A stretch of DNA of 64,000 bases from Zygnema circumcarinatum SAG 698-1b (lineage: Eukaryota > Plantae > Zygnematophyceae). Positions within the stretch are counted from its first letter, which is position 1; every line of letters starts with the position of its first letter. The notes below the pieces were generated by a model that saw only the letters and a program-made list of their open reading frames with translations, searched no databases and was not told the DNA's origin. The position numbers and the translations under genes were made by a program. Positions 2,990 to 62,924 of the stretch are shown in pieces. Location: NCBI GenBank assembly GCA_037447605.1, contig CM074809.1, positions 3,462,689 to 3,526,688 of the forward strand, written 5' to 3'.

Positions 2990-3582
2990 GGGGCCGACGA
3001 AGTTGCACGGTTGTATGTTGACAAGGTGTGGAGCCAACCAACATAGACTACAGTCGGAAATAGTTTCTGACCGTGACCCCCGATTCACTGGCCACTTCTG
3101 GAAAGAAGTTCTCAGGATCGTGGGAACCAAGCAGGCTCTAAGTACAGCCTTCCACCCGCAAACCGATGGCCAGACAGGAAGGGTGAACCGGATCCTGGAG
3201 GATTATCTCCGGCATTATGTGGGACCTACCCCGGATGGGTGGGATCAGCTGCTCCCAGTGGCGGAGTATGCCATCAATAATGCTTTCCAGGAGTCCATAG
3301 GGACCACTCCTTTCTTCCTGAACTTTGGTCAGCACCCCCTAAATCCCCTGCAGCCAAAGGATCAGCCACCTGACCTGTGGAACATGGACGTCCACAGAAC
3401 CAATGATCCTTGGCGCATGAGGGGCACTGATGGGGATCAACCTCCCGTAGTGAGATCTTTTGTCCGGCTAATGTCCGAGGCGCTGTAGAGGGCACGGCAG
3501 ATTCTGCTAGCCGCCCAGTCGCGACAAAAGGCCTATGCTGACAGCGGGCGTGCTCACCTCACCTTCGATATTGGCACTGAAG
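2990..3582 (+). pseudogene. Gypsy integrase fragment
   Basis: EIVSDRDPRFTGHFW, STAFHPQTDGQTGRVNR, W..LLPVAEYAINN motifs. Confidence 0.9.
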
Positions 3583-3592
3583 NNNNNNNNNN

Positions 3593-4861
3593 GTTGGATC
3601 CCCCTACACCTTGGTGTGGAGGACGGCTCGTCCTCATCCCTCGCATATAGTGCGATCTATGTTCCATCTTGCCCATCGTGCCATGACTTTCCAAGGGTCA
3701 GCCAATGGCCACCCAGCAGTTATACTGCTAGACACTGGGGCCGATGCTAACTTTGTTAGTTTTGCATTTACCCAGAGATTTGCATTGACCATGGAACCCC
3801 ATTCAGAAAGTGTTACTTTTGGGGATGGACGCAAGGGCCAGATCTCTGGCAGCGTCCCACTCAAGATCAAGCTCCAATCCTACTTCGGGGTAGTGAAGTG
3901 TCTTTTAACACAGCTAGCCCCTGGTACGGATCTTATTCTGGGGAGTGCTTGGTTGACCATGGTCAAGGCCAAATTGGATTTTTCTATCCCACATTGCATT
4001 TTGCACAGTGGTGATAGGCGCATCACACTGCACCCTGGCAAACCCACCACCACTGCTACCACGCAGGTTGATGCTCCTTATCTTTGCTCGGCCATGCAGT
4101 TGGCCAAGGCAGTTAAAGAGGGCTGCACCTTATTTATGGTGTATGTCATGGCAGCCACTCAGGATGTGCATGACGAAGATCAGGAATGGCAGATCACATC
4201 TACGGACGTGCTCTCGGCTGTTCCACCCAAAATCCAACCTTTGTTGGATGAGTTCAGGGATGTTTTCCCTGATGACCTTCCAAGAGGGTTGCCACCATCT
4301 CGAGGAGTGGGGCACACGATCCCTCTTGAGCCTAAGCAAAAACCGCCTTGGCGGCCAATCTATCGGTTAAGCCCTAAGGAAACCGACGAGATGCGTAAGC
4401 AATTGGCTAATTTACGGGACAAGGGCTGGATAGAGCCCAGCCAAAGCCCATTTGGGGCGCCCATCTTGTTCGTTGGGAAGAAAGATGGCTCGTTGAGGAT
4501 GTGCATTGATTATCGCGCACTCAACAAGATCACCGTAAAGAACCGTTTTGCTTTACCACGTATTGATGATCTGTTGGATCGTCTTCACGGTGCCAAAGTG
4601 TTTACATCACTTGACCTTGCTCAGGGGTATCATCAGATCCGTGTAACGGAAGCTGATGTGCCAAAGACTGCGTTCCGGACGCCGATTGGTCATTTCCAGT
4701 ATAAGGTGTTGCCCTTCGGATTGACTAATGCTCCGGCCACTTTCCAGGCGGTGATGAACGAAATGTTCATCCGCATGGATGAATTTGTTTTGGTTTACCT
4801 CGATGACATCCTTGTCTTCAGTAAGACAGAGGAAAAGCATTTTGAACACGTTCGGAAAGTG
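3593..4861 (+). CDS. Gypsy pol fragment: aspartic protease and reverse transcriptase
   Basis: LLDTGADANF protease; RMCIDYRALN, LPRIDDLL, LPFGLTNAPATFQ, VYLDDILVFS; bounded by N gaps. Confidence 0.95.
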
Positions 4862-4871
4862 NNNNNNNNNN

Positions 4872-5470
4872 AGGAGGCATACTTAGGGCGTACCCCGCTC
4901 TAATATCCTCGTCCCGGTTGCCACCTAATGGTTACGGCGCCAGACCTTGGACCGGTAGGTCTTGAGTTCGAACCTTGGCGCTGCGGCCTCTGGTTCTCTT
5001 TTGGAATTCCCCAGTCGTCCGTACGATTGCGTCATACGGACCGACCGACATTTTTGGCCGCGCGTTGCGTGTCAGACCTAGCCGTGCACCGCCGCACAAA
5101 ACCGCGTCGCGACGCGGCGCGTTTTCGTGAGATGCGGCGGGCCCGCGGACTCTTGTCCTCATCTGATCTTTTCAGTTAGAGGAACCCACGTGGCGGTCTG
5201 CCATTGGACAGCCCTGCTTTCGGTCCCCCATGCTGGTAGAGGGTTCAACAGGGGAAGCATATAGGGGCGAGGATGACTGTCGTCATCCAACCAACGTATC
5301 GGCATTTATTTTCACCCTCTCTCAGGGCTGCGCCGCTCCTCGGGCTGACGCTCACTCTCTCACTCTCTCACTCTCTCTCTCTCTCTCTCCATCCCTCTCC
5401 CGTGATCTCGGGCGCGCAAGCTGAGTGTTTTCCGCACACAAATGAAGGGACCCGCCCGACAGTTGTTACA
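4872..5470 (+). mobile_element. Gypsy 5' LTR (family G), start hidden in gap
   Basis: Ends GTTACA, followed by PBS; homologous to solo LTR 10965-11606. Confidence 0.85.
4916..4984 (+). promoter_or_regulatory. tRNA-like module with Pol III A/B boxes inside Gypsy LTR
   Basis: TAATGGTTA D-loop-like; AGGTC-TTGAG-TTCGAAC-CTTGG T-arm; TTTT about 15 nt downstream. Confidence 0.7.
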
Positions 5471-5471
5471 G

Positions 5472-5484
5472 TGGTATCAGAGCC
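5472..5484 (+). promoter_or_regulatory. PBS complementary to initiator tRNA-Met 3' end
   Basis: TGGTATCAGAGCC. Confidence 0.95.
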
Positions 5485-5520
5485 GAGTTTCGGCTGTCTC
5501 CTTTTGGAGAACCTGTGGGT

Positions 5521-7084
5521 CATGGTGACCACTCGCCGGGCCGGGGGCAACTCGGGGCCCTAGCGGCCACCCCCTTCATTGGACGTCCCTGAGGACGTGC
5601 CAATGGAGGATCCTCCGGGGTCCCCTGACCCCGCGCCGATGGACCCCTCGGGTCCATCACAGCCGGCGGCTCCTCAAGAGCCGCCGCAGCCTCCTCCCCC
5701 CTCTGAACCGGCTGCACCGACGTCTCCGAGTGAGGCACGGATGGTGGCCCTCCCCGACGGGTTCGGGGCGAACATCTTGGTGGGTGTGGGACAGATCCTC
5801 CGACAGAGGATCTACTCCTTGGGGGACAAGGTGTCTTCCTTGGAGTCACGGATGGTCGGGACGTGGAACAAGTTTGACGTAATGGAGTTGCACGTCTGCC
5901 GGCTGGTGGAATCGCTGCAGGAGGATCTCCGACACCTGTCGGAGAAGATGGACCACTTCGGAGAAGGTATGTCTCGATCCAAATCTCAGGTTGTATATTC
6001 AGAGGCGGTGGCGGGAAATGCCACCGTACTTGGGGTTAGGATCGGGACTGTTGTCCATGCCTCCTTGTCTGTCCCGACATCCTCTCCGGCTGCCGAATCC
6101 AGCCGGCTGAACACTGAGCCCCCTGCGTCATCTACAGGGGGAAGCCACCCCCGCGGGGGTGGCGGCCCACCCAGCGGCGGCGGGATCCCTACGGGGGCGG
6201 CTGTTGGCAGTGGAGGAGAGCACAGCCGTGGGGCTGCTCCTCCAGAACCAACCCCAAAAGGGAAGAGGAATCGGGCCAAGGTGCCGCCGATCTCCTTCTA
6301 GGGGGAAAACCCTGCAACCGACTGCTCAATCGAGCAGTGGTTGGGTCAAACAAGGGGCTACCTTTGTGCGACGAACTGCCCACCGATCAAATGGGTAAGC
6401 TTTGCTTACCCATCCCTCAGAGGCTCCGCATACCGTGTGTATGAGGGCCTCTTGGATGAAATCGGTGATGACTGGGATAAGTTCAGAGATGAACTTATCA
6501 AACACTTCGGATCCTTGGATCTGGGAATGGAGGCCAGAGACAAGTATCAGAACCTGGTCCAAACCGGCAGTGTCAAGCAGTATCTGCGCGACCTGCGGCA
6601 AGTGGTGCCTCAAATCACCACACCCTACAGACCAACTCAGATTGAGTTCTTTTTCCATTTTAGGAATGGTCTGAAGCCTCACATCAAGAGGCAGCTTCGG
6701 CTGAACCCGAGGACTCTCAAGAATTGGGAGCCCTCCGACTCTAAATTGTATTTTGATGCAGCAATTCAGATTGACACCACCCCTGCCAGTGAGGCAGGAA
6801 CATCTAAGACACAACCACCGCGGGTGGGTGATGCAGAGGGCGCCAGAAGGGGCGCTGGCTTTGCAAAGCCCTCCGGGAAGGACAAGCGGAAGCCGTCGTC
6901 ATCCGCCGGAAAACAGCCACCTGTGAAGGTGCAAAAACTCACTCCGCAGGAGGCGGAACGAATGCGGAAGGAGAACCGGTATTTCCGGTGCCGCAAGGAG
7001 GGACACAAGTCCCACGAGTGCCCCCTCAACAACAGGGATAAGAGGGGGAAGGGCCCAGAAAACGGGGAACCACCAGCAGCTTAG
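5521..7084 (+). pseudogene. Gypsy gag with long Pro-rich N-terminus; two in-frame stops (5561, 6299)
   Basis: MVTTRRAGG.. start; retrotransposon-gag-like core (W..F..ELIKHF, LVQTGSVKQY); knuckle YFRCRKEGHKSHEC. Confidence 0.85.
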
Positions 7085-8405
7085 GGGCCGCTGCGGGTGG
7101 GAGGACTAGGCAGGGGATTAGGGATGCTGCAGCTGCCATCATATTCTATGTTAGTGTAAAGTAGTTAGGAACTAGTTGTACACTAAGTTGTTGGTACTAA
7201 GTTCTAAGGAGGGGTGTGCTCATGTTGTCCACATTGTACGGAGGGGCGTCTAGGCGACCGTACAAGTCTTTAAGGGGTGTGCGTGTAGCGCGCAGAGTCT
7301 GATTTGGCAAGGCAAGGCATCAGAATGTNNNNNNNNNNACTCACATGAGGGTGAGGCTATCTTGCTTAGGGCCAAGGAGATAGTGGGAAGAGTTCAGCTT
7401 GTAGTGGGTGGTTTATTCACGTAGCTTGAGAAGAGGTGCTTGAAGCTTGGCTCTAGTGTTGTCAAGTTGTATTTCATCTTTATCTTAAGGAGTTTTAGGC
7501 TGGTGGCTTTCTCCTTACATTTTCATATTTCCGCTGAGTTGTTCTCTTGCATTTAGTGTGCTTTGTGTGATTGAGCAATTCATTGAAGATGTCGAGTTCT
7601 ACCCAGGGTAGAGGAGAAGTGGCAGCCCCACCAAGGGAGGGCGCTGCAACAACATTCTAGACCCCAGTGTTTTTGAAGGCTGGGGAGGTTTTTAATGTGA
7701 TGGGCAGAATTTGTGTGAAGAGTGATTTAATTGTCTGTGATCCTCTTCCTGCGGCATTTTCCTTGTCCCCAGCCACTGTGGTGGCTCCTTTTGGTTTTCT
7801 GGAGGTGGTGATGAAATCCCAATGGAATGTTATTATTCTCAATACCATGGGTGCCCCCACTTTGATGGAATGCTCTTTGGATGCCTTGCGTTTGATGCAT
7901 TCGACGGATTGTGTGACAGCGTTGCATGTTCTCATGCCCCAGCATCTATCAATCAGCACGTTCACCAACACCGCTTGGAAACTTTCCAAGCGGTGGAGAA
8001 AAGGGCACCCCATGGTGTAGGGAGGCATAGGATCCACCGGTAAAATGGTGCGATCACCACACACATTGGTGTAGAGGACTGCAAAGCCTCAAACCCCGCA
8101 TGTAATACGCTCAACGTTCCACCTTGGCCATCGTGCAATGACATTCCACGAGTCCGTTAATGGACAACCTGCAGTGATACTGCTAGATACAAGGGCGGAT
8201 GCTAACTTTGTTAGCTCCACCCTGACGAAAGGGATTGGATTTGACCACAACCCCAAATGCTGAAAGTGTAACTTTCGAGGATGGACGCAAAGGCCAAATC
8301 CTTGGCAGCGTCACGCTCAGGATCAAGCTCCAGTCGTACTCAGGGGCAACTCAGTGTTTAATTACACTTCTGGCTCCTAGTACGGATGTCATACTGGGCA
8401 GTGCT
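7085..8405 (+). pseudogene. Gypsy pol 5' part in -1 frame to gag: about 165-aa pre-protease segment plus protease, split by a solo LTR
   Basis: After removing 7149-7659 the frame is continuous, apart from three TAG stops, into LLDTRADANF; homologous to 3593-3960. Confidence 0.75.
7149..7654 (+). mobile_element. Solo Copia LTR (family E), internal gap
   Basis: TG..CA; TSD TTCTA at 7144-7148 and 7655-7659; matches reverse complement of 29290-30321. Confidence 0.9.
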
Positions 8406-9055
8406 GAATCTTCCGATTCGTACGGGGAACATTGGAGTACGGACTTCGATATGAGAGGGGGCCGAACAGCGTGATCAGATACACCGACTCGAACTGGGGA
8501 GGTCACATGGACACATCGCGATCGACTTTTGGATTCATGTACCTGAACGCAGGTGGAGCCATCTCATTGAGCTCGAAAATACTGGATTCGGTGGCATTGT
8601 CAAGCACCGAAGGCGAGTACATGGGAGCATGTCACGCAACAAAGGAGGGCGTTTGGTTCCAACATTTCTTTGATGAGTGTAAGAGGCCACAAAGTCCCTT
8701 GACTCTCTTCACAGATAACCAGTCATCCATAGCTCCTGTTGAAAACCTTGTGTTTCAAAAGAGAACTAAGCACATTAGAAGTACAATACCACTATGTGCG
8801 AGAATTGGCAACGGAGGGGATGATCGTGGTAAAAATCGTAGGAATGAAGGAGCAAGCTGCGGATATGTTAACTAAGGGAGTTAGTGGGGAGACACTACTA
8901 ATGAATAGCAGACTCATTGGGCTAGGGCCCATGAGGAACTGAGGCCCAAGAGGGGGATTGTTAGTGTTAGTGTAGGATAATTAGACATTGTATGGGTTCA
9001 CACTAACATTGTTGTGGTCCTCAGTTTGGGCAACATGGGAATTGCTAGTATTACT
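8406..9055 (+). pseudogene. Copia RT/RNase H C-terminus, PPT (8948-8958) and start of 3' LTR (8959)
   Basis: YTDSNWGG, ALSSTEGEY, TDNQS, ADMLTKG; AAGAGGGGGAT. Confidence 0.9.
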
Positions 9056-9407
9056 CCATATCGTCCATGTTGATAGCTCGTCGGCAGTCATGGTCGATTC
9101 CTCGATAGGTGGTCTGATGATCCCGTTCACGTACTGAGCCATGTTCTTGGTCAACAAGAGGGTCATCATGTGCCACCGCCAGTCCTTGTAGTCAGTACCT
9201 TTAAAGATTGGAATAGAGTGCCGAATGTCACCATCAGCTCTGATAACACTTGTTGGTAGTTCCATCGTGGAACCACCTTTTGAAGAGTTGCCTCCACTCA
9301 ATTTTGTGGTCACCGACATCTTTGCTGGAGCAGTTCTCGAAGGGAATGCTCAAGACAGATGTGAGGCAAAGAACACAAAGGTAGAGAAAGCCCCACCAGG
9401 CATAAAA
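9056..9407 (-). pseudogene. Family C LTR end, mutated PBS and gag N-terminus
   Basis: MSVTTKLSGG..ELPTSVIRADGD..IPIFKGTDYKDWRW, homologous to 1296. Confidence 0.8.
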
Positions 9408-10292
9408 TGTTAGTGTTAGTGTATGATAGTTAGACATTGTATGGCACACACTAACTTGTTGTGGTACTCAGTTTGTAGAACATGAGATCTGCTAGGCGTA
9501 GTGCTCTTAGATTTAGGAATGTCGGTGCTCTGACTCAGGTGAGTGCGCCGCGAGTGCGCGGAGTACGAACGAGCGNNNNNNNNNNGTAGTGAGTGAGAGG
9601 GACCTTGAAGTAGTGGGAGAACTTCATTGTGGGAAGACAGTTTTATTATAAGGAGTTTTAGAGCCGTGAGCTTTCTCCTAACACTCTCTCATTGTGATTT
9701 CCGCTGTGCTTGTCTTGTAGCTTCATTCTGTTGTTATGGGCGATGAGTGAAGTAAGATAGAGCTTTGAGTGTTTGAATGTCTTCATCCGTGGGAACTCAA
9801 GTTCCAATGGAGGGCGACACCCAAGGTGGCGCCGGAAGTGGGGAGCAAACCCCTGCTTCAACACCTACGACCCTAGACCTTCCGTAGACCTTCCGTACCG
9901 TGCCCTAACATTACGGGCATCCCCCATGTTTGGTCCTACACCAAACATGACCATTCATGCATGACATTGTCCCTACATCAACACATGATCTCCTGGACAA
10001 CTTTCATGCGAGGAACTAAGTACCAACACGTTGATGTACCTATACATCAACAAGAACTTCATGTGGGTTGGCATTTCATTATAAGGAGCTTTAGAGCCGT
10101 GAGCTTTCTCCTACACTTCTCTCTATTGTTTTCCACTATGCTTATCTCTGGTATTTTTTCTGTGAGTTATGTATTCAGATAGAGCCTTGGAGTGATAAAG
10201 TGGAAATGTGTTCATTGGTGGGAACACGTGTTCCCGTGGAGGGCGGCACACGAGGTGTTGCGGGAAGCAGCAAACAATCCCCTACTTCAACA
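9408..10292 (+). mobile_element. Nested Copia LTR fragments (B-type 9408-9863, D-type 9864-10052 on -, B-type 10053-10292)
   Basis: Homology to 16716-17609 and 46150-46343; two CTTCAACA LTR ends. Confidence 0.7.
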
Positions 10293-10964
10293 AGGGTCAC
10301 GGCATGCCAAGCTACATAAGCGGCTCCATTGGGAGCAACTTATATCCAAAATATCCTGAACATCCAAAACCTTTATGGGGAGGTTCACGCCCCTGATTGC
10401 CACACAAGGGAGTAGTGCTTCTTGAGTGTATGTAGCGAGTTGAGGATGGGTGAGGTAGTTAGGGGCAGCCATAGTGCGCTTAGTAGAGCGTAGGATAAAG
10501 CCAGAGTGAGGAGTTGAGAACTGCCTGCGCTTGTTGTATCTTTCATTGTATAAAGAAGAAGAGGTTTTCGGCCGGTGGGCTTTTTCTATTACACTTTTTC
10601 TCACGGTTCTTGCTTGGCTCGCGGTAGTCAGCATGGCCGAGACGAATGCAAGTGAATACACGACCAGTGGGGGTCTTACGACCCCTTATCCTCTATAAGT
10701 GGCATCGAAGCCGCTTTAGCGGAAACCAATTCAACAAGTGGTATCATAGTTGAAGGTGATGTGCGGCACACCGTCCTTATCTTTCCAGAGACTGACTACA
10801 AGGATCGTCGGTTGCAGATGACAACCTCATTTCAAAGCAAGGGCCTACTGAAGTACATCAACGAGACGATCACACCACCGGCCAACTTCACCACCGTGCC
10901 TCTGGACGAGCTAGAGTAGGCAACGTGGTGGACGAAAGACGTTCAAGTGAGTATGTTGATATCC

Positions 10965-11606
10965 TGTAACGTACACGGGGGCCTACCTCCGTGTGCGTGC
11001 GGAAACCTCCTCCCGTACCAGCCACGCACTCCTCCAGCGAGTGCAGTCAGCCAGCCAGCCAGCAAGCACCGAGAGCGCCGGCCAAAGAGAGAGAGCGAGA
11101 GCAAAAGGCGGCACTCGCCTCTGAAGGGTTCAGCGCCAGGAAATGCTGGTACGATCGTTGGCCGATCCCAGTCGGCCACGCCCCTTGTACGCTTCCCCCG
11201 TTGAACCCCCTACCAGCATGAGGGACCGGAAGCAGGGCTGTCCAATGGCAGGCTGCCACGTGTGCCTCTCTGATCGAAAAGGTCAGATGGGAGTTAGAGT
11301 CCGTGGCCCAGCCGTACCGCACGGATCCGCGCTGCGGCGCGGCGCCGAGAAGTGCGGTGGCGCACAGCGAGGCCCGACGCGCCAAGCGCGGGCCGGCGTG
11401 TCGGTCGGTCCGTACACCCAAGGTGTACGGATGTCTGACAGATACCAAAAGGGGAACCAAAGGCAGCAGCGCCAAGGTTCGAACTCAAGACGTGCTGGTC
11501 CAAAGGCCGGCGCCTATACCATCTGGCTGGCGCCCGAAGTGAGAGAACTAGGCGAAGTACGCCGTAAGTAGTCTCCTCCCATGGGTGACTGCAGCGTTCC
11601 GCTACA
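10965..11606 (-). mobile_element. Solo Gypsy LTR (family G), 642 bp
   Basis: TGTAGCGGAACGCT...GTTACA; TSD TATCC at 10960-10964 and 11607-11611. Confidence 0.92.
11467..11536 (-). promoter_or_regulatory. tRNA-like module (Gln-UUG/Pro-like) with A/B boxes in solo LTR
   Basis: GCCAGATGGTATAGGC D-arm, CTTTGGA loop, TTGAG-TTCGAAC-CTTGG T-arm. Confidence 0.7.
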
Positions 11607-14537
11607 TATCCTTAAGCGTCAATGGGAATCCCGCAGAGATGCTGCGCGAGCTTCAGACTGCCCGAGAGATGTGGCAAAAGCTCACAACCATCTACAACAC
11701 CATTGACACGAACGTAAAGTTTGAGCTGTACTTCGAGCTGGCGATCGATCAACGGAATGCCCAGAGGAAGAAAGGTGGAGCGCCGAACACGTTCCACACT
11801 TACCACAAGTGGGAACCACCAGGACACCTTGCACGCAATTGCGTGGGAGATAGTTGCAACCGCATGTGCTAACGGCAGCACATGCGTTGACGGCCAAGCA
11901 AGGCACGCTTAAGATAGCGTGCTCAGCTGCCGCAAAACTGCCCGTGCTACAAATGGCACGACAAGCAGTCAAGCCGCGAGTGTTGGGAGCAAACGTGAAG
12001 GGGGGCAACGTGCACTTATGATAGTTTGTTCAACAACCAAGGAATTGCCCCACCACAGATGGTGCGAGGAGCAATGGAGCCGCGAGTGCTCAAAGATGAC
12101 GCATTCAAATGCAGAGGCGGTGTTGCAACGCCCGCTTATGATAGCGAGCTCAAACCTTGCCTCCAAGATAGATGACGCGTCAATCCTTGCGTCGTCTCAC
12201 GCCACCAACAATTCGACGCAGCTTCGTACAATTCTGAATCGCGCGCCGACAATTTGACGCCGCATTGCGTCAAGTCCAAATCGTCCAATCCAAAGGCTGA
12301 CGCCGCGCTGCGTCACTTCCAATTCGCGAGTCGCATCACATCTTCAATTCGATCCGCGGCTGCATTCGCGCCACATCACATTTCGAATCATCGCGTCGCG
12401 CCTCGTCACTTCTGACTCCGTCGCGCCGCGCCTCTCCATCGACCAAAGTCCGTACCGCCGCCTGTCGGTCTAGGCGCACATTGCCGCAAAAGGGCCACAC
12501 ACAACACACGCACACAAAACTAATGTCCCAACAACAACTTGTCTAGTGACTAACTACTATACACTAACAGTAGACATCTTCACAGCAGCTGTTCGCAAAA
12601 GGAAAGCTCAAGACAAATGTAAGACAAGAGAGGTCAAGCTAGAGAAAGCCCCACCGGGCTTAAAACTCTGAATTCCTTGGAGTTGGAGTACAACAGATCC
12701 AAGCAGCCCCTGACTACTTAATGCAGCTTGCACTACCCCGCTTTTTATTCCCAAGACTAGCAGCACAGTTTCCCCTTAACTACAAGCTCGGCCTCAACTC
12801 GCTACACACCCCCATTGGCGTGTAGTATGAGGTTAGTGAACGTTCCACCTCGGTACACACTACCCTTAGTGTGAGATTGGAAGTTACTTGGTTCACCGCA
12901 GCTGAGCAGCTATGTAGGTGCGGCAGCAATTGACTCGAGTCACCTCTACCGGCATGCAAGGGCCATGCTTCCGGCGGTAAGGGACATGTGACGCTTCGCC
13001 GTCGATAGTCNNNNNNNNNNTGCTGGTCCAAAGGCCGGCGCCTATACCATCTGGCTGGCGCCCGAAGTGAGAGAACTAGGCGAAGTACGCCGTAAGTAGT
13101 CTCCTCCCATGGGTGACTGCAGCGTTCCGCTACATATCCTTAAGCGTCAATGGGAATCCCGCAGAGATGCTGCGCGAGCTTCAGACTGCCCGAGAGATGT
13201 GGCAAAAGCTCACAACCATCTACAACACCATTGACACGAACGTAAAGTTTGAGCTGTACTTCGAGCTGGCGATCGATCAACGGAATGCCCAGAGGAAGAA
13301 AGGTGGAGCGCCGAACACGTTCCACACTTACCACAAGTGGGAACCACCAGGACACCTTGCACGCAATTGCGTGGGAGATAGTTGCAACCGCATGTGCTAA
13401 CGGCAGCACATGCGTTGACGGCCAAGCAAGGCACGCTTAAGATAGCGTGCTCAGCTGCCGCAAAACTGCCCGTGCTACAAATGGCACGACAAGCAGTCAA
13501 GCCGCGAGTGTTGGGAGCAAACGTGAAGGGGGGCAACGCACTTATGATAGTTTGTTCAACAACCAAGGAATTGCCCCACCACAGATGGTGCGAGGAGCAA
13601 TGGAGCCGCGAGTGCTCAAAGATGACGCATTCAAATGCAGAGGCGGTGTTGCAACGCCCGCTTATGATAGCGAGCTCAAACCTTGCCTCCAAGATAGATG
13701 ACGCGTCAATCCTTGCGTCGTCTCACGCCACCAACAATTCGACGCAGCTTCGTACAATTCTGAATCGCGCGCCGACAATTTGACGCCGCATTGCGTCAAG
13801 TCCAAATCGTCCAATCCAAAGGCTGACGCCGCGCTGCGTCACTTCCAATTCGCGAGTCGCATCACATCTTCAATTCGATCCGCGGCTGCATTCGCGCCAC
13901 ATCACATTTCGAATCATCGCGTCGCGCCTCGTCACTTCTGACTCCGTCGCGCCGCGCCTCTCCATCGACCAAAGTCCGTACCGCCGCCTGTCGGTCTAGG
14001 CGCACATTGCCGCAAAAGGGCCACACACAACACACGCACACAAAACTAATGTCCCAACAACAACTTGTCTAGTGACTAACTACTATACACTAACAGTAGA
14101 CATCTTCACAGCAGCTGTTCGCAAAAGGAAAGCTCAAGACAAATGTAAGACAAGAGAGGTCAAGCTAGAGAAAGCCCCACCGGGCTTAAAACTCTGAATT
14201 CCTTGGAGTTGGAGTACAACAGATCCAAGCAGCCCCTGACTACTTAATGCAGCTTGCACTACCCCGCTTTTTATTCCCAAGACTAGCAGCACAGTTTCCC
14301 CTTAACTACAAGCTCGGCCTCAACTCGCTACACACCCCCATTGGCGTGTAGTATGAGGTTAGTGAACGTTCCACCTCGGTACACACTACCCTTAGTGTGA
14401 GATTGGAAGTTACTTGGTTCACCGCAGCTGAGCAGCTATGTAGGTGCGGCAGCAATTGACTCGAGTCACCTCTACCGGCATGCAAGGGCCATGCTTCCGG
14501 CGGTAAGGGACATGTGACGCTTCGCCGTCGATAGTCC
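11494..14537. repeat. About 1.52-kb direct duplication either side of N gap (likely contig overlap)
   Basis: 11494-13010 vs 13021-14537 essentially identical; one 2-bp indel seen. Confidence 0.85.
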
Positions 14538-14928
14538 CCTCCTACGGCCCTTGGAGCTTTACCGGCTGAAGTCCCCTTCTTCAGCGTCGCTATTTTGCCA
14601 AAGGGAAGGTGGGTTCGTGCGACCGAACAGTTCCCAACTTAGCGGCTCACGCGCCCTCTCTTGTCCGCGTCATAACATCTTCAAGACTTGGCGTCTCGCG
14701 CGCCCGCGCGCGCTCCCGCCTTTGTGCGACCAAAATGTTGCATTCGCGTGACGTATCGTCGTGTCACCATGCGCGCGCCGATACTCCGTTTTGTCACGTC
14801 ACGGTTCAAGAACTTATCGCGTCACATTTGTTTGCACAACCAACCTTGTCGCTTCATGTTCGCGTCTAGTTCATTATCCGCTAGAGACTTTGCGCCAAAC
14901 GTTGTACGGCCTCTAGTCAAGTACAACA
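14095..14928 (-). mobile_element. Family C 3' LTR (interrupted at 14094), PPT 14929-14940
   Basis: Homology to 18663-18956; TTCCCCCTCTTG adjacent. Confidence 0.75.
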
Positions 14929-23792: not shown

Positions 23793-25802
23793 TCAGTTTC
23801 TCATGGGCCCTAGCCCAATTAGCTTGTTATTCACTAGTAGAGTTTCCCCGCTGACTCCTTTCGTCAACATGTCTGCAGCCTGCTCCTTCGTACCTACAAA
23901 CTTCACAACAATCATCCCCTCCTCCACCAATTCGCGCACATAGTGATACTGCACCCTAATGTGCTTGGTCCTCTTGTGGAACACTGGATTTTCCACCAAG
24001 GCAATGGACGACTGATTGTCCGTGAACAAGGTAACAGGCAGTTGCGGCCTCTTACACTCCTCGAAGAAATGTTGAAACCACACTCCCTCCTTGGCTGCAT
24101 GGCAAGCTCCCATGTACTCGCCCTTGGTGCTCGACAACGCCACTGAATCTTGCAATTTGGAGCTCCACGAGATGGCTCCACCTCCATTCAGGAACACGAA
24201 TCCCGAAGTCGATCTTGACGTATCCACGTCACCTCCCCAATCTGAATCGGTGTATCCAATCACTCGATTCGGCCCCCTCTCATATCTGAGGCCGTACTCC
24301 AAAGTCCCCCGTACATACCTGAAGATTCTCTTCACGGCTTCCCAATGTTCAGGGCCTGGATTCTCCATGAACCGACTTGCTGAGCTCACGGCTTTGGCCA
24401 AGTCCGGTCGTGTACCAATCATTAGGTACATTAAACTCCCTATAGCAGATCTGTACGGCACTCCGTACACTCGCTGTACCTCCGCATCTGATGCGGGCGC
24501 CATCTCCTTTGATATTCGCGCCCCGATCTCCATTGGGCTGGTACACGGTCTGCAATCCTCCACATGAAATCTCGCAAGTACATCCGTAGCGTATTTCTTC
24601 TGACACACGAAGAGGCTGCCGTCCTGCCCCCTCTTCAGCTGCATCCCTAACAGATACTGCGCCTCCCCTAGATCCGACATCTTGAAGTTAGCTTGCAAGA
24701 GCTGCTTCAAGTCCTTGATTCTCTCCAGCGAGAGACTCACCATAATGAGGTCGTCAACGTAGATCCCAACGTACATGAGATCCTCCCCTTCTCCTTGTCG
24801 GTAGACAGAATGATCTGTCTCAAATCGCGCAAATCCGTTCCTCCTGAGAAGATCGTCAATCTTCTCGTACCAGATCCTGGGCGCCTGCTTTAATCCGTAC
24901 AGGCTTTTCACTAGGCGACAAACTAGATGCTCTTGGCCCGGGACGATCTTCCCTTCGGGCTGTTCCATGTAGATCTCCTCGGTGAGATCGTCGTACAGGA
25001 ACGCGGTCTTGATGTCCAACTGATGGACATGCATCCCTTCCGCAGCTGCAATCGAAATCAAGGCTTTGAGGGAGTTGAACTTCACCACCAGGGCGAAAGT
25101 CTCCGTATAGTCAATTCCGTACTTCTGGCTGTAGCCCTTCGCCACCAGCCGCGCCTTGTAACGGTCGACACTCCCGTCCGCCTTCCGCTTCACCTTGAAC
25201 ACCCACTTGCATCCAATGGCTCGTCTTCCTCTCAGCAGCTTCTCTAGTCGCCACGTGCCATTCTCAATCAGACTGTCCCATTCGCTGTCAATGGCCGCTC
25301 TCCACTTGTCTCCATCGACCCCATCATGAGCCTCCTCAATCGTTTGCGGCTCGGTGATCATGAAGCAATGAGCAACTCCTGCAAGATCAGCGGAGTCTGT
25401 AGGCACTCTCTCTTGCACCAGGTTGTTTTGTGAAGGCCTGAAATGATCAGGCTTCCTCACCGGTCGGCTGCTCCTCTGGACTCCTTGCACTCTCCCACCT
25501 CTCGGGTTGAAGAAGATGCCGGGAACAAACCCTGGAGGCATGTTCGATAACATCGCCTCTCTCTCCTCCGTCTCCAAATCACCGGACTCCTGTCGGTGCA
25601 ACGGGACGGTCTCGTCCGAGTTCNNNNNNNNNNTGGGTTTCCTCCCACTCCACACCTCCTCAGGAACCTGATCCTTGAGGACAGAGGATGGGCACCTGTT
25701 CCTAAGGTACGCGGCAGTCATCACTGCCTCGCCCCAGAAGGATGCTTGAAACGGGGAATCAATCAACATGGTTCGCGCCATGTCCCCTAACGTCCTGTTC
25801 AC
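23793..25802 (-). CDS. Family B pol: integrase C-terminus, RT, RNase H
   Basis: KARLVAKGYSQ, SLYGLKQAPR, YVDDLIM, YTDSDWGG. Confidence 0.95.
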   Translation of the reverse strand: MNRTLGDMARTMLIDSPFQASFWGEAVMTAAYLRNRCPSSVLKDQVPEEVWSGRKPXXXXNSDETVPLHRQESGDLETEEREAMLSNMPPGFVPGIFFNPRGGRVQGVQRSSRPVRKPDHFRPSQNNLVQERVPTDSADLAGVAHCFMITEPQTIEEAHDGVDGDKWRAAIDSEWDSLIENGTWRLEKLLRGRRAIGCKWVFKVKRKADGSVDRYKARLVAKGYSQKYGIDYTETFALVVKFNSLKALISIAAAEGMHVHQLDIKTAFLYDDLTEEIYMEQPEGKIVPGQEHLVCRLVKSLYGLKQAPRIWYEKIDDLLRRNGFARFETDHSVYRQGEGEDLMYVGIYVDDLIMVSLSLERIKDLKQLLQANFKMSDLGEAQYLLGMQLKRGQDGSLFVCQKKYATDVLARFHVEDCRPCTSPMEIGARISKEMAPASDAEVQRVYGVPYRSAIGSLMYLMIGTRPDLAKAVSSASRFMENPGPEHWEAVKRIFRYVRGTLEYGLRYERGPNRVIGYTDSDWGGDVDTSRSTSGFVFLNGGGAISWSSKLQDSVALSSTKGEYMGACHAAKEGVWFQHFFEECKRPQLPVTLFTDNQSSIALVENPVFHKRTKHIRVQYHYVRELVEEGMIVVKFVGTKEQAADMLTKGVSGETLLVNNKLIGLGPMRN

Positions 25803-25914
25803 TTCTCAGCAGCTCCATTACTTTGAGGGGAATAGGGAGCAGAGAATTCATGCCTTACTCCTTGAGACTCCAGATATGCAGCGAACTCCTTGGACTTGAT
25901 GTAACAAACCCGCC

Positions 25915-25980
25915 CCTGGCAGGGTTCGAACACAAGACCTCCCGGTACCCACACCAGTGCTTTACCATTAAAAGGCAACC
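25915..25980 (-). promoter_or_regulatory. tRNA-like A/B-box module in TRIM 3' LTR
   Basis: TTAATGGTAAAGC; CTGGT/ACCGG stem; AGGTC; GTGTTCGAACCC. Confidence 0.75.
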
Positions 25981-26238
25981 ACGGATGTAAGTACTAGGCC
26001 ATACAACACATGTATAGCGTTTCGCTACATTCCTCCCCACCTAAACCGGGCTCGTCCTCGAGCGCACTCAAGGGTTTTCACGAGCAGCGTTCAAGCTCCT
26101 TCAACACATGGACTACGGCCTTAGCCCCTCAGGCCACTAAGGAACGGGTTCCTGTACCATGCTCAGAGATCACGGTGTTTTTAGGGTGGATTACAAATAC
26201 CGGGCACTAGGCTCTGATACCAATGTAACAAACCCGCC

Positions 26239-26304
26239 CCTGGCAGGGTTCGAACACAAGACCTCCCGGTACCCACACCAGTGCTTTACCATTAAAAGGC
26301 AACC
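26239..26304 (-). promoter_or_regulatory. tRNA-like A/B-box module in TRIM 5' LTR
   Basis: Identical to 25915-25980. Confidence 0.75.
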
Positions 26305-26353
26305 GCGGATGTAAGTACTAGGCCATACAACACATGTATAGCGTTTCGCTACA

Positions 26354-27742
26354 CTTGAACTCGCCTCCGTTGTCCGAACGAAGTGTCTTCAACTTGAGTC
26401 CAGTCTCTCTCTCCATCTGAACTTGCCAATCTCTGAAGGCTCCGAATGCCTCAGACTTGTTCTTGAGAATCTTCACCCAGATCTTCCTCGAAAAATCGTC
26501 CAAGAAGGTGATGAAGTATCGAGCTCCTCCAGTCGTTGCCGGTGTCACGGGGCCGCAGAGGTCGGTATGGACTAACTCCAACTTCTCCTTCGCATGGAAC
26601 GACTCTTCTCCACTCCTTGCGAAAGGTCTCCTATGCGCCTTCCCCTCCACACACTCTTTGCAAAATCCAAGCTCCTTCTCAACTACGTCAACATCCAACC
26701 CACGGACCAGCCCCTTTTCTGCTAGTTGCTGCAAGCCCCTATGGTTGAGGTGACCAAGTCTACGATGCCAGAGATTTACTGCATCTTCAGCCACGGCCAT
26801 GACATCCTCGTCTTCTTCTCTTCTATAGTGAAGGTAATACAACCCTCCCTTCTCAAACCCCTTAAACAGCTGCTTCCCCGTCACCATGTGGGTAGCTACG
26901 CAAGACTTCTCCCTAAAAGTGACCTCATAACCCCTCTTACACACTTGGCTAACAGACATGAAGTTCTGTTTTAGCTCAGGGGTGTGAAGAACGTCACCAA
27001 TGCACAGACGCTCTTGCCTTTCTTCTTCGTAGATCACAGAGCCGTCTCAAAGGATCATCTTGACTACTCCTCCTTTTGTGACGGTCACTCCTTCTCCGGT
27101 TGCTGAGTGAACGGATCGAGTCCTCTCCAACGTATCCAACGTGGAGAACATTCGCTTGTTGCCACACATGTGTGTGGAAGCGCCAGAGTCGATCAGCCAT
27201 GGCCGCTTCAGATCCTGCACTTGGATCTTCCCAACAAAGTCAGAATGTTCGGTCACCAGGAGATTCGTCTCCACTGCCACTCTGCAATCAGCACTCTTGT
27301 GGCCACGCTTCTTGCATTTGAAGCAGGTCCCCTTGAACCCCTTCTTCTCCTTCTTGAAGGATGACGAAGCGCCTCCTCCCCGATCTGGGGTCCCCTTGTT
27401 CTTGTAACAGTCTGCCGAGTAGTGGCCGCTCTTGCCACACGTGTAGCACGCTCCCGCAGGACGCTCTCCTCGGTCTGACTTCACCGCGCCTCCTCTTCGG
27501 TCTTGACGTGAGTGCAGCGCAAGCACCTTTGCTTCGGTGCTCCCAACGTCTTGAACTGAGTCCTCCTCCTTGATCCTTCGTTTCACTTGCTCAAGGGTCA
27601 TTTTCGAATTCGTTAGGACTGTTCTAAGAGCCGCAACTGCTACATCAAAACGGGCAGGCAGTCTGATACCACTTGTTGAGGATGATGTGTCATACACCGA
27701 ACCTCCTCTCGTCGTGTCTTCACTCGCATCTGTCGCGGCCAT
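26354..27742 (-). pseudogene. Chimeric gag-protease-integrase: element A leader fused in frame to family B gag C-half
   Basis: MAATDASE..STSGIR/LPARFDVAVAAL; two CCHC knuckles; WLIDSGAS; LWHRRLGH; stop in protease. Confidence 0.8.
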
Positions 27743-52600: not shown

Positions 52601-52697
52601 ATACCGTTTTAAAATGTGCATTTTGTCGCAGGTATTTTAATAACAACAACTTCTTAGGAGCAGTGCCTGCGTATGTCGGATACTGGACACGGACGTT
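46553..52697 (+). CDS. Partial gene: plant-type LRR protein (LRR-RLK/RLP-like ectodomain), 20 one-repeat exons
   Basis: Consensus xLxxNxLxGxIPxxxGxLxxLxxL; exons 66-75 bp, all phase 2; 1428 nt joined without stops; 18 of 20 acceptors are AG. Confidence 0.92.
46808..46879 (+). CDS. LRR exon 2 (acceptor reads CG)
   Basis: NLAGNQLTGQIPAELGNLVNAQNT; donor gtgagc. Confidence 0.7.
47294..47368 (+). CDS. LRR exon 3
   Basis: YLNDNKLSGSLPSTFGNTLEELTVL. Confidence 0.9.
47499..47570 (+). CDS. LRR exon 4
   Basis: YLYNNRLTGPIPDSLGNATMLTDL. Confidence 0.92.
47709..47780 (+). CDS. LRR exon 5
   Basis: SLANNYFTGSVPSSFGNLVNLRSL. Confidence 0.92.
48085..48156 (+). CDS. LRR exon 6
   Basis: SLQDNALDGTLPATFGNMVNLASL. 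Confidence 0.92.
48365..48436 (+). CDS. LRR exon 7
   Basis: NLANNFLTGEIPANIGNLTALGNL. Confidence 0.92.
48768..48842 (+). CDS. LRR exon 8
   Basis: VINYPNNLYGSIPSSIGNMIYLSTL. Confidence 0.88.
49211..49282 (+). CDS. LRR exon 9
   Basis: DLSSMSLNGSIPASLSQLQGLYSL. Confidence 0.9.
49477..49548 (+). CDS. LRR exon 10
   Basis: QLSGNSLSGPIPENIGNMTGLRYL. Confidence 0.92.
49936..50007 (+). CDS. LRR exon 11
   Basis: DLSSNQLTDNIPSSIGNCIYLNTL. Confidence 0.92.
50338..50409 (+). CDS. LRR exon 12
   Basis: ALNNNKLSGRIPDSIGRLTNLYNI. Confidence 0.92.
50606..50677 (+). CDS. LRR exon 13
   Basis: NLRNNSLNGTIPATIKFIANLQYL. Confidence 0.92.
50898..50969 (+). CDS. LRR exon 14
   Basis: YLDQNQLSGNIPAEIARFPYMNEL. 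Confidence 0.92.
51224..51295 (+). CDS. LRR exon 15
   Basis: ILANNSLSGVLPESFGDLSSLYIL. Confidence 0.92.
51710..51781 (+). CDS. LRR exon 16
   Basis: SLANNNLAGSIPTTFSKLGSLRYL. Confidence 0.92.
51904..51972 (+). CDS. LRR exon 17
   Basis: DLQGNLFNGSFPTTLTKLSISLL. Confidence 0.88.
52134..52199 (+). CDS. LRR exon 18
   Basis: RMSNNQLTGILPQFSTTSLRYV. Confidence 0.88.
52339..52407 (+). CDS. LRR exon 19 (acceptor reads AA)
   Basis: DLSYSQLTGTIPLFPDGCCWMRL; donor gtgagc. Confidence 0.65.
52632..52697 (+). CDS. LRR exon 20 (3' boundary less certain)
   Basis: YFNNNNFLGAVPAYVGYWTRTL; donor gtatga, otherwise stop six codons later. Confidence 0.75.
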
Positions 52698-52729
52698 GTA
52701 TGACTCAGAACTCTAAAGCTGACAATCTC

Positions 52730-53153
52730 AGTTTCTTTGAACATACCACGGTATTCGGAAGGACTTTGGAGGGGTCTGGAAATTGCTAACGCACCAAACG
52801 TGATGTGGGCCCCAATCATGGGATTGGAGGGTTCTGCCGGAGCCGAGGGCTCCGGTGGCACGAGAGGAGAGGCAGGATTCTCCGGATGACCCTGGTCATC
52901 CGTGGGCTCAGGACTGTGGCCCTCCATGGGGACGGGCGCAATCTCCGAGTGCTCCTCCATTTCCTCGTCCTGGGGGACGGGAAGTGGAGGTGGTGGCCCA
53001 GAGGGCCCTGGGTCCCCTCCGGCCCAGCGTGTGGTCACCATGACCCACTAGGTTCTTCCAAAAGAAGAAGGCCGCAACGCGGCTCTGATACCAAATGTCA
53101 CGGCTGATATCTAGCTCCTTCAGCCTACGCGGAATAGCACTCAGTCTGCACGC
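52730..53153 (-). pseudogene. Gypsy remnant: LTR end (53096 onward), PBS 53081-53093, Pro-rich gag N-terminus
   Basis: MVTTRWAGGDPGP.. homologous to 5521; left boundary approximate. Confidence 0.7.
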
Positions 53154-53163
53154 NNNNNNNNNN

Positions 53164-60609: not shown

Positions 60610-61648
60610 TCAAACACTCAAAGCTCTATCTTACTGCAATCATCGCCCATAACAACAGCATGAAGCTACAAGACAAGCACAGCCGGAATCACAATGAGAG
60701 TGTTAGGAGAAGCTCACGCTCTAAAACTCCTTATAATAAAACTGCTCTCCCACACGAAGCTTCTCCCACTACTCAAGGTCCCTCTACTCACGCCACCACG
60801 ACACAAGTGTAGGCAGCCTAGCAGCACGAGCAGGCACAGAATAAGACCCGAGACTATGACAAAGTAGTGTGGGTGGGTTACTTCCCATAATAAAACTATG
60901 CACTATATAATATGGCGTCCGTGACGTGACACACATGTCACGCTGGGCCCGCCATCAGAAACCCATGCACCGAGTCCGAGCTGGCGATTAGAATACGACC
61001 GCTAGCGGCGTCTCGTGAAAACCCACAAGCAGTCAGCCGTACTCCAGTTCTTGCTCACGACACTGCCCGCAGACAAGATCGCTGCTTTCGCCATACCGGC
61101 CTCTTCCTAGTCTTCGCCCGCCGACACCTCGGTCGTACACTCGAACTCGCGGACCCACATTGCGAGTGGTCCACGTGGCGCATTCCGGTTCGCCGCCAAA
61201 TATCTTCTATGTCGTTTCCGCGCCGCAACTTTGCGCTCCGCGTTTCGCGCCCGCGCCGCGACCAATCAAAGTTGCGCGCGTCCGTACTTCGCGAATCCGC
61301 GGCCGCGCCTCGACCAATCAAAGTTGCGCGTCCGTTCTCCGCGCACATGTGTCAGCGCCGCGTCCAATCAGCGCCGCTCGTTCGTACTCCGCGCACTCGC
61401 GGCGCACTCACCTGAGTCAGAGCACCGACATTCCTAAATCTAAGAGCACTACGCCTAGCAGATCTCATGTTCTACAAACTGAGTACCACAACAAGTTAGT
61501 GTGTGCCATACAATGTCTAACTATCATACACTAACACTAACAATGAACCTCCTACCAGCATGGAGGATTGGAAGCAAGGCTGTTCAGTGGCAACCCGCCA
61601 CGTGTCCATCTCTGACCCAAATGGGTTAAAGGAGTGCAACGTACGAAT

Positions 61649-62540: not shown

Positions 62541-62924
62541 CGTCACGAATTCCAGAGAGCAATTATTTTGCCTCCGTATCTCCGGGCCAGGTTTGACTCC
62601 CCCCTTTTTGCCCCCCCGCGCTCCCTCCGCCGCCTGCCGCCTGCCGCCCTCCATTTTGTCGCTACGCGCGTCACCACCGCGCGAGCGGCGTCCCGCCGCG
62701 GTGCCTCGCGCCCGCCGCTTGCCCGCATGCTCGCTCGCTGCGAGCTCATATCAGCTCGGGTTTAGGGTTGAGGGCTCCTCCCTCGCCATGGCCGAGCTAT
62801 CCTTGCAGCGGAACGAGCAGAGCGTCCTCTCGCCTCACCCCAGTGAACGGTGATCGGTGTGCCGTCGACCACGGCAAGAGCGCGATCGGTTTATGGGGAC
62901 GACGGCGGACTTGAGCAGCGGTGA

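Follow-up and report, generated by a model that had tools for sequence, protein, structure and literature searches.

The window analysed here, a stretch of 64,000 nucleotides of DNA, raised the question of whether a small non-coding retrotransposon (TRIM) inherited the tRNA-like segment in its LTRs from a coding element. According to the original prediction, a gag/pol-coding Gypsy lineage at 4872-11606 carries the same segment in its LTRs, and would be both autonomous partner and ancestor of the TRIM.

Remnants of a gypsy-type element, a solo LTR and a TRIM

The interval 4872-11606 is a mosaic of a dead, truncated Ty3/gypsy-type element, unrelated repeats and a solo LTR of a sister family (Table 1). 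The gypsy-type piece begins with a long LTR (LTR A), the first ~28 nt of which are lost to a gap at 4862-4871, and breaks off at ~7148, where a foreign repeat interrupts it. Its gag frame is interrupted by two in-frame stops (5561-5563 and 6299-6301). Relatives matched Retrotrans_gag, with or without Ty3_capsid. No protease or pol was found downstream of gag, and nothing coding lies past 7084. This did not bear out the description of the element as coding for gag and pol.

Only the 5' LTR of the element is present in the window, with no second LTR flanking the internal region. No full-length gag-pol copy with two LTRs was found within the window, only the dead gag fragment. A PR-RT segment (3611-4861) and an integrase piece (3003-3488) lie on other contigs and in the wrong order, and are not attributable to LTR A. 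At the gap 4862-4871, an RT fragment on one side faces LTR interior on the other, indicating that the two sides are not continuous. The gaps 7329-7338 and 9576-9585 each fall within a foreign repeat. On either side of each gap the sequence is collinear with further copies of the repeat concerned; the hidden lengths are ~533 and ~583 nt, respectively.

The solo LTR (LTR B) is flanked by a 5-bp target-site duplication, TATCC (10960-10964 and 11607-11611). LTRs A and B are 74.8% identical over 440 nt. The identity rises to ~90% in a second conserved island, versus ~70% elsewhere. This island contains CACGTG (5187-5192), CCATTGG (5201-5207) and a TATA-like CATATAGG (5258-5265), and is matched by a third LTR fragment at 61544-61624. 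From these elements, the G-box/CCAAT island is likely the Pol II promoter of the long LTRs. It is not in the TRIM LTR.

The TRIM interrupts a reading frame for a Copia integrase and is flanked on both sides by the duplication TCAAG. It is shorter than 1 kb, with two LTRs, a primer-binding site (PBS), a polypurine tract and no coding capacity. The LTRs, 130 nt each, are identical at 129 of 130 nt and enclose an internal part of 194 nt.

Table 1. Coordinates of the features in the window
Feature	Position	Strand	Details
Long LTR A	4872-5470	+	5' LTR of gypsy-type element; ends in GTTACA
tRNA-derived block, LTR A	4909-4989	+	tRNA-profile part 4927-4981; B-box core GTTCGAACC 4966-4974; 12.2 bits, E 0.0078
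TTTT after block, LTR A	4999-5002	+	~15 nt 3' of block; conserved in LTR B; proposed Pol III terminator
Second conserved island, long LTRs	5187-5267	+	Candidate Pol II promoter core
Primer-binding site TGGTATCAGAGCC	5472-5484	+	One base past the end of LTR A
gag reading frame with zinc knuckle	5522-7084	+	Pfam Retrotrans_gag, E 1.3e-07
Foreign repeats	7149-10964	.	Copia-like and other fragments, outside the gypsy element; contain both gaps
Solo LTR B, 642 nt	10965-11606	-	Start TGTAGCGGAACGCT, end GTTACA
tRNA-derived block, solo LTR B	11461-11542	-	Profile part 11525-11467; B-box core 11484-11476; 13.1 bits, E 0.0042
TRIM, 454 nt	25900-26353	-	LTRs 26353-26224 and 26029-25900; PBS 26222-26210; polypurine tract 26041-30
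tRNA-derived block, TRIM 3' LTR	25909-25987	-	Same block as in 5' LTR
tRNA-derived block, TRIM 5' LTR	26233-26311	-	Profile part 26291-26238, ungapped; B-box core 26255-26247
Third gypsy-lineage relative (I20)	52637-53153	-	LTR end ...GTGACA, same PBS, gag start MVTTR...

A block and LTR ends shared by the long LTRs and the TRIM

A block of ~60-70 nt was found in LTR A, solo LTR B and both TRIM LTRs, 50-72 nt from the LTR start; a common module at an offset of about 50-70 nt had been predicted. Its 24-nt core, ACCRGNANGTCTTGNGTTCGAACC, matched four places in the window (4951-4974 on the + strand; 11476-11499, 25923-25946 and 26247-26270 on the - strand), where chance would produce none. Local alignment of the TRIM LTR with LTR A gave z = 9.4, which none of 1000 shuffles reached, and with solo LTR B z = 5.5, reached by 2 of 1000. 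On the basis of this core and these alignments, we regard the blocks of the long LTRs and the TRIM as homologous; they represent three independent versions in the window (n = 3). Outside the termini and the block (first 14 nt to block), the TRIM showed no significant similarity to the long LTRs (z = 1.9 and -0.1).

The longest run identical between A and B is 26 nt (4959-4984) and falls on the B-box half of the block; the TRIM keeps 24 of the 27 nt that overlap it. No part of the LTR is better conserved than this half, which is therefore a putative protein-binding site under constraint. The case for constraint is only suggestive, because at 75% identity a 26-nt identical run has a rough chance of ~0.06.

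The LTR ends were compared as well. Within the window, the start TGTAGCGRAACGCT is restricted to the two TRIM LTRs, the solo LTR and the assembly duplicate of that solo LTR (13121-13134). The predicted match of LTR starts held for solo LTR B and the TRIM, which are identical at 13 of 14 nt with a hairpin in both, but not for LTR A, whose start is lost to the gap. The link from the matching start to a coding element thus passes through the 75%-identical sister LTR. The end GTTACA was present in all three LTRs, as predicted. Among 11 PBS-bearing sites in the window, the end GT[TG]ACA was confined to the TRIM, the gag-bearing LTR A and the third relative with a gag; CAACAAG is the end of seven Copia-like LTRs. 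The third relative is cut by a gap at 53154, and its block region was not assembled.

The PBS itself, which we take to match the 3' terminus of the initiator tRNA-Met of plants, occurs at all 11 sites. It cannot identify the partner of the TRIM, since Copia elements are among the sites that share it.

Origin of the block and of the TRIM

A tRNA profile was built from 18 annotated E. coli tRNAs and 128 kb were searched. The four block copies were the top four matches of the window (12.2-14.6 bits, E 0.0015-0.008) and shared one register and orientation; the next match scored 4.0 bits. The two TRIM copies reached 14.6 and 14.5 bits (E 0.0015). Only one of 100 shuffled windows reached 12.2 bits and none reached 14.5. 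The match was collinear over ~55 tRNA positions, from the D-loop to the T arm, with the B box intact. It began at tRNA position 13-17, and neither the acceptor arm nor the 5' portion of box A was recognizable. The TRIM and LTR A have D-loops longer by 2-3 nt. Because the four copies head the profile matches, we interpreted the block as a decayed tRNA derivative, either a piece of a tRNA or the head of a tRNA-derived SINE.

The block is not a working tRNA. ARAGORN with default settings called no tRNA in the blocks, and Rfam gave no tRNA match to them even at E up to 10. With relaxed settings, ARAGORN made 38 calls in the window and called 2-6% of shuffles, which is near background. The block consensus showed no conserved cloverleaf (four paired arms, 7-nt anticodon loop), and in folding the blocks did not surpass shuffled sequence (z = -0.5 to -0.9). 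These results gave no support to the suggestion that the block yields a short tRNA-like RNA. No match to 5S rRNA was found in the window or the three blocks.

The evidence in the window for the pairing is fragmentary. It suggested that the TRIM probably descends from, and depends on, the block-bearing gypsy-type lineage, since LTR ends and the decayed tRNA-derived block are shared. In both long LTRs the tRNA piece lies in U3, ~200 nt upstream of the G-box/CCAAT island, and it would already have been present in the LTR of the coding lineage. Deletion of a ~500-nt LTR body, including this island, would then have produced a TRIM with a 130-nt LTR, which retains the start, the tRNA piece at about equal offset, and the end. 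The TRIM is probably still mobilized in trans by the integrase and reverse transcriptase of the lineage, because LTR ends, primer and 5-bp duplications agree. The original claim of origin by deletion thus fits the shared block and ends, but was not matched by a gag-pol copy or by significant homology of the LTRs outside the ends and block.

Another explanation is that the block serves as a working type-2 Pol III promoter, with TFIIIC on the B box, as proposed for Helenus/TRIMp3. The template RNA of the TRIM would come from Pol III, and the block and TTTT of the long LTRs would direct an RNA of ~90 nt. We consider this unlikely. In its favor, every copy has an intact B-box core, no LTR segment is better conserved, and the spacing from the D-loop GG to the T-loop in the TRIM equals that of a tRNA, ungapped. 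The TRIM retained the block yet lost the Pol II-like island. The TTTT that had been predicted after the block was kept in both long LTRs (at 11450-11447 on the - strand in LTR B), and such a mechanism was proposed for Helenus (Kojima 2024; PMC10886601). On the other hand, the unrecognizable acceptor arm and 5' part of box A speak against it. Under the motif rule of Kojima (TRGCY, YGG, GGTTC) every copy has mismatches, one per motif: TTGCC...TGG and TGTTC in the TRIM, TTGCC...TGG and AGTTC in LTR A, and CAGCC or GCGCC...TGG and AGTTC in LTR B. Moreover, the TRIM block has an internal TTTT (26297-26294), just downstream of the expected Pol III start.

A wider reading would join such promoter use to descent of the TRIM from the gypsy-type lineage: a coding Ty3/gypsy element would keep a selected, tRNA-derived B box in U3, adjacent to the Pol II promoter of the element, and a Helenus-type TRIM would be born by deletion of the LTR body, with the relic as its sole promoter. 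We regard this as a doubtful, tentative proposal.

Independent capture of the same tRNA or tRNA-derived SINE by the TRIM and the long LTRs, with the shared ends reflecting recognition by a common integrase, is very unlikely. It would agree with the lack of significant similarity beyond the ends and block, and SINE insertion into a TRIM LTR was the origin favored by Kojima 2024 (PMC10886601). However, the blocks have equal orientation and similar offsets from the LTR start (50 vs 72 nt), and the TRIM and LTR B share a 7-mer, GCCTAGT, situated 11-12 nt upstream of the block. No free SINE with such a head was found in the window, and neither a poly(A) tail nor a duplication was found around the block. 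The near-identical LTR starts with their hairpins also argue against it.

That the block is a conserved U3 enhancer with a chance likeness to tRNA is hardly credible: it would explain the negative Rfam and default ARAGORN results, the near-background relaxed calls and the absent folding signal, but not the collinear match or the top ranking of the four copies by an independent tRNA profile with a 10-bit margin over background.

Comparison with known systems

TRIMs with LTRs derived from small RNAs (Cassandra, Helenus, Ajax) are not known to have an autonomous partner with LTR sequence in common. A published long-LTR, gag-bearing relative sharing the block with a tRNA-like TRIM was not found in the literature searched. 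The original statement that no description existed therefore holds for the pairing with a long-LTR coding relative, but not for TRIMs with tRNA-like LTRs, which have been published as Helenus/TRIMp3 (Kojima 2024; PMC10886601). In that study, SINE insertion into a TRIM was proposed as the origin, and LTR sequence shared with an autonomous partner was deemed unlikely. Pol III transcription from the Helenus LTR was proposed there and is unvalidated (PMC10886601).

The TRIM resembles Helenus in being short and non-coding, with two LTRs, a PBS, a polypurine tract, a 5-bp duplication and a tRNA-like segment within each LTR. Helenus in plants likewise makes a 5-bp target duplication, and most Helenus LTRs have a box A of TRGCY plus YGG and a box B of GGTTC (PMC10886601). 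Helenus-1_SMo from Selaginella moellendorffii is the only published plant Helenus (PMC10886601). Aligned by eye, the TRIM block and the tRNA-like part of the Helenus-1_SMo LTR agree at ~61% across 71 tRNA positions, rising to ~70% between D-loop and T-loop. The sizes differ (LTR 130 nt plus internal 194 nt here, versus 120 plus 85), as do the LTR ends. Decay of the tRNA part has gone much further here than in Helenus-1_SMo, leaving neither an acceptor arm nor a 5' box A recognizable. The two differ above all in that the long LTRs of a gag-bearing lineage also carry the block here.

If the wider reading above is true, this TRIM would be the first TRIMp3 found to share LTR sequence with an identifiable autonomous partner, and autonomous LTRs could be a source of Pol III-type TRIMs in place of SINE insertion into a TRIM. 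A gag-bearing long-LTR lineage with the same relic and ends would be a concrete helper candidate, would point to inheritance from the autonomous element with later LTR shrinkage, and would be the second case in the plant lineage, after Selaginella. It would also make testable whether one LTR family can combine a Pol II promoter with a TFIIIC/Pol III site.

SINE2 heads are similar in that they, too, are decayed tRNA segments in which the B box and a portion of box A are preserved. A SINE2-type head was seen in a metagenome match (L001), an unrelated animal-like contig. Unlike SINE2, the block lacks a LINE-type tail and poly(A), lies inside the LTR and moves with the LTR element.

Cassandra is also a TRIM whose LTR contains sequence from a small RNA gene transcribed by Pol III. 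As far as Kalendar et al. 2008 is cited in PMC10886601, its source is 5S rRNA with promoter and terminator; here the source is a tRNA. The autonomous partner of Cassandra is not known (PMC10886601).

Ordinary pairs of TRIMs and autonomous LTR retrotransposons, to the extent that Gao et al. 2016 is cited in PMC10886601, resemble the present case: the partner was likewise inferred from shared LTR sequence, PBS and duplication length, and the TRIM was likewise viewed as a deletion derivative. Unlike in those pairs, as described there, what the LTR interiors share here is a specific segment, the tRNA-derived block and its B box.

The tRNA-derived block in long and miniature LTRs

The 24-nt core pattern of the block occurred four times in the window, against none expected by chance. 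Two of the occurrences were in LTR A, the 5' LTR of a gypsy-type element, and LTR B, a solo long LTR; the other two were in the LTRs of the TRIM, a miniature retrotransposon. When the TRIM LTR was aligned locally with the whole of LTR A, z was 9.4, and none of 1000 dinucleotide shuffles reached the score. With LTR B, z was 5.5, and 2 of 1000 shuffles reached the score. The original prediction, that the long LTRs and the TRIM carry the same module, was upheld by these results, and the shared feature is real. Scanning with a profile of all three block versions turned up no further copies in the window.

The block started at position 50 of the TRIM LTR and position 72 of LTR B. In the segment separating the first 14 nt from the block, TRIM and LTR B were marginally similar (z = 1.9; 122 of 2000 shuffles), and similarity between TRIM and LTR A was absent. 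Both the TRIM and LTR B carried the 7-mer GCCTAGT, 11-12 nt upstream of the block.

Two matches to the block in other sequence collections were rejected. A metagenome contig (L001, 1500-1650, minus strand) matched the core, and was an unrelated AT-rich contig with a SINE-like tRNA head containing the same B-box core; it is probably animal DNA. The match in a viral contig was a single chance match within a phage reading frame.

Features of the gypsy-type lineage, the TRIM and their surroundings in the window
Feature	Position	Strand	Remarks
LTR A	4872-5470	+	followed by one base, then the PBS
PBS of gypsy element	5472-5484	+	
gag frame	5522-7084	+	Pfam Retrotrans_gag domain and zinc knuckle
Copia-like and other unrelated fragments	7149-10964		
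Gap	7329-7338		inside foreign repeat; about 533 nt hidden
Gap	9576-9585		inside other repeats; about 583 nt hidden
Solo LTR B	11606-10965	-	642 nt; TATCC on both flanks
TRIM	26353-25900	-	454 nt; 130-nt LTRs with one difference; polypurine tract; TSD TCAAG
Third relative	53153-52637	-	LTR end, same PBS, start of same gag; LTR cut by gap

LTR A and LTR B were 74.8% identical over 440 nt, which indicated two sister families within one lineage. The LTR start TGTAGCGRAACGCT was confined, within the window, to LTR B, its duplicate and the TRIM. The PBS sequence, TGGTATCAGAGC, which is complementary to plant initiator tRNA-Met at its 3' end, was found at eleven sites in the window and was therefore not diagnostic. 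Almost all LTR elements in the window use this primer type.

On the other hand, the LTR end GT[TG]ACA followed by one or two bases was found only in LTR A, the TRIM and the third gag-bearing relative. Seven Copia-like LTRs ended in CAACAAG, followed by TGGTATCAGAG, at junctions 1367, 9248, 18660, 32216, 43867, 54198 and 60520. The LTR end, unlike the PBS, is diagnostic.

As read from the sequence, a 7-bp hairpin could form at the start (17-19 nt) of the TRIM (26353-26335) and of solo LTR B (11606-11588), both on the minus strand. It consists of TGTAGCG, a 3-nt loop and CGCTA/G..CA, and its pairs differ between the two, T-A/G-T against T-G/G-C.

Ancestry and conservation of the block

A profile HMM was built on 18 class-I tRNAs annotated in E. 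coli K-12 (L002-L008), and both strands of the window were scanned with it. The four block copies were the four best matches, with 14.6, 14.5, 13.1 and 12.2 bits (E 0.0015 to 0.0078); the next-best match in the window reached 4.0 bits. All four matched in the same orientation, from tRNA positions 13-17 to 68-70, and the TRIM block did so without gaps. Among 100 block-shuffled windows, a single one scored as high as 12.2 bits, and 14.5 bits was not reached. By these results the block is a tRNA, or a tRNA-SINE head, in decayed form. It comprises the D-loop GG, anticodon arm, variable loop and T arm, and its B-box core is intact. Neither the acceptor arm nor the 5' half of box A could still be recognised.

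Searches for tRNA structure gave a different answer. ARAGORN at default settings found no tRNA genes in the window, and Rfam at the gathering threshold found no matches in it. For each of the three blocks, Rfam gave no tRNA match with E up to 10. The RNAfold z-scores of the blocks were -0.5 to -0.9, and the consensus fold contained no cloverleaf. The original prediction had staked tRNA ancestry on the module aligning to tRNAs better than shuffled sequence. This held at the sequence level (profile HMM), but not at the structure level (default ARAGORN, Rfam, RNAfold and consensus fold).

Relaxed ARAGORN (-ps80) made calls on the TRIM and LTR B, not on LTR A, and these were rejected as evidence. 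At these 80% thresholds there were 38 calls in the window, 2-6% of shuffled 130-mers were also called, and the calls on TRIM and LTR B differed in register in the 5' half. Plant tRNA-Pro was suggested as the source by the 'Pro' label of the relaxed calls, and we make no claim for it.

The alignment of LTR A and LTR B contained two islands of about 90% identity, compared with about 70% elsewhere. The first island, the B-box half of the block, included the longest stretch without a difference (26 nt, 4959-4984); the TRIM kept 24 of the 27 nt overlapping this stretch. The second (about 5187-5267) contained CACGTG, CCATTGG and a TATA-like motif, and is probably the Pol II promoter core. The TRIM LTR kept the first island, and the second was absent. 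A third LTR family was represented by a fragment (61544-61624, minus strand) that matched only the G-box/CCAAT island of the long LTRs, at 80-82% identity. Adjoining this fragment are 168 nt with 100% identity to 9408-9575.

At this level of identity, the chance of a 26-nt identical run is roughly 0.06, so constraint on the B-box half of the block is graded as suggestive, not proven. It is possible that the block is a working Pol III promoter. This would be attractive for the TRIM, from which the other promoter island has been lost; however, the 5' part of box A is eroded, each block copy mismatches the motif rule given for Helenus (TRIMp3), and a TTTT lies inside the TRIM block at 26297-26294. 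The conservation pattern and the lack of RNA structure are both consistent with a putative protein site in the DNA of the B box.

The gag-bearing element and the scaffold around it

The gag frame was interrupted by in-frame stops at 5561-5563 and 6299-6301. No protease or pol was found downstream of gag; the DNA from 7149 onwards is another repeat. The element had been described in the original prediction as coding for gag and pol, but the window contained a gag with two stops and lacked pol. Relatives of this gag had long N-terminal extensions, and some of them matched Ty3_capsid, which supported the Ty3/gypsy type. Among 1.84 billion representative proteins there was no close relative of the gag, the best match having 37% identity (E 1.6e-16). 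For the RT of the neighbouring contig, the best protein match was 57% over most of the length and up to 74% over part, and the named matches were from Closterium, Chara and Tanacetum. These matches place the host among the streptophytes, as one absent from the protein collections.

Small contigs with sixteen N runs between them, most of 10 N, make up the scaffold of the window, which is dense in repeats. The two gaps in the table left the gypsy coding region untouched. The flanks of the first were collinear with another copy, with order and orientation kept (7149-7328 resembled 30321-30141, and 7339-7656 resembled 29607-29288). At the second, 9408-9575 equalled 61542-61375, and 9586-9863 resembled 60791-60523.

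A further gap (4862-4871) borders LTR A, of which the first 28 nt or so are missing there. An RT fragment that stops mid-domain is joined at this gap to the interior of the LTR, which indicated that the two sides are not continuous. The contigs before LTR A carry a gypsy integrase piece (3003-3488), then a 10-N gap, then a protease-RT piece (3611-4861). A single element would not have these pieces in this order, and the scaffold order is therefore unusable for rebuilding elements here.

About 1.5 kb before gap 13011-13020 (11493-13010) was repeated nearly identically after it (13021-14538), with a 2-nt indel. This is probably an unmerged contig overlap, and for this reason the partial LTR at 13021-13134 was not counted as an independent copy. 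Near the window end (62900-63900) there were dense tandem repeats with periods of 9, 21 and about 143 nt, rich in CCCTTGCC-type units.

Origin of the TRIM and comparison with Helenus

The TRIM splits a Copia integrase reading frame (25634-26500, minus strand), and its 5-bp duplications are intact; it is a young nested insertion. Its PBS is the same as that of the gypsy element and lies one base past the LTR. A 20-nt match between its internal region and 2119-2138, within a Copia gag of the opposite strand, was dismissed as chance.

The original prediction derived the TRIM from the coding lineage. This evolutionary reading is plausible from the sequences and was supported in part: the gypsy lineage and the TRIM have in common the LTR ends, the tRNA-derived block at a similar offset, the primer and the 5-bp duplications. 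The part that we infer is that the TRIM LTR would be a long LTR from which a body of about 500 nt was removed. If so, the tRNA piece would predate the TRIM. This gypsy lineage probably mobilises the TRIM in trans.

Helenus comprises TRIMs with tRNA-like LTRs, reported from fungi, animals and one plant, Selaginella moellendorffii (Kojima 2024, PMC10886601). Helenus-1_SMo has an LTR of 120 nt, an internal part of 85 nt and a 5-bp TSD (PMC10886601). Helenus was proposed to originate from SINE insertion into a TRIM LTR, and a long LTR stretch common to Helenus and an autonomous partner was judged unlikely; no autonomous partner is known for Cassandra (PMC10886601). A 2026 sugar-beet survey mentioned Helenus only in passing.

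In the literature we found no description of a TRIM with a tRNA-like LTR paired with a long-LTR, gag-bearing relative that shares the block. The TRIM here has the anatomy of Helenus but is a different, more decayed family, and its block matched the tRNA-like part of the Helenus-1_SMo LTR at about 61% of 71 positions, counted by eye. TRIMs with tRNA-like LTRs were already known; the new finding is a gag-bearing relative that has long LTRs and carries the block too.
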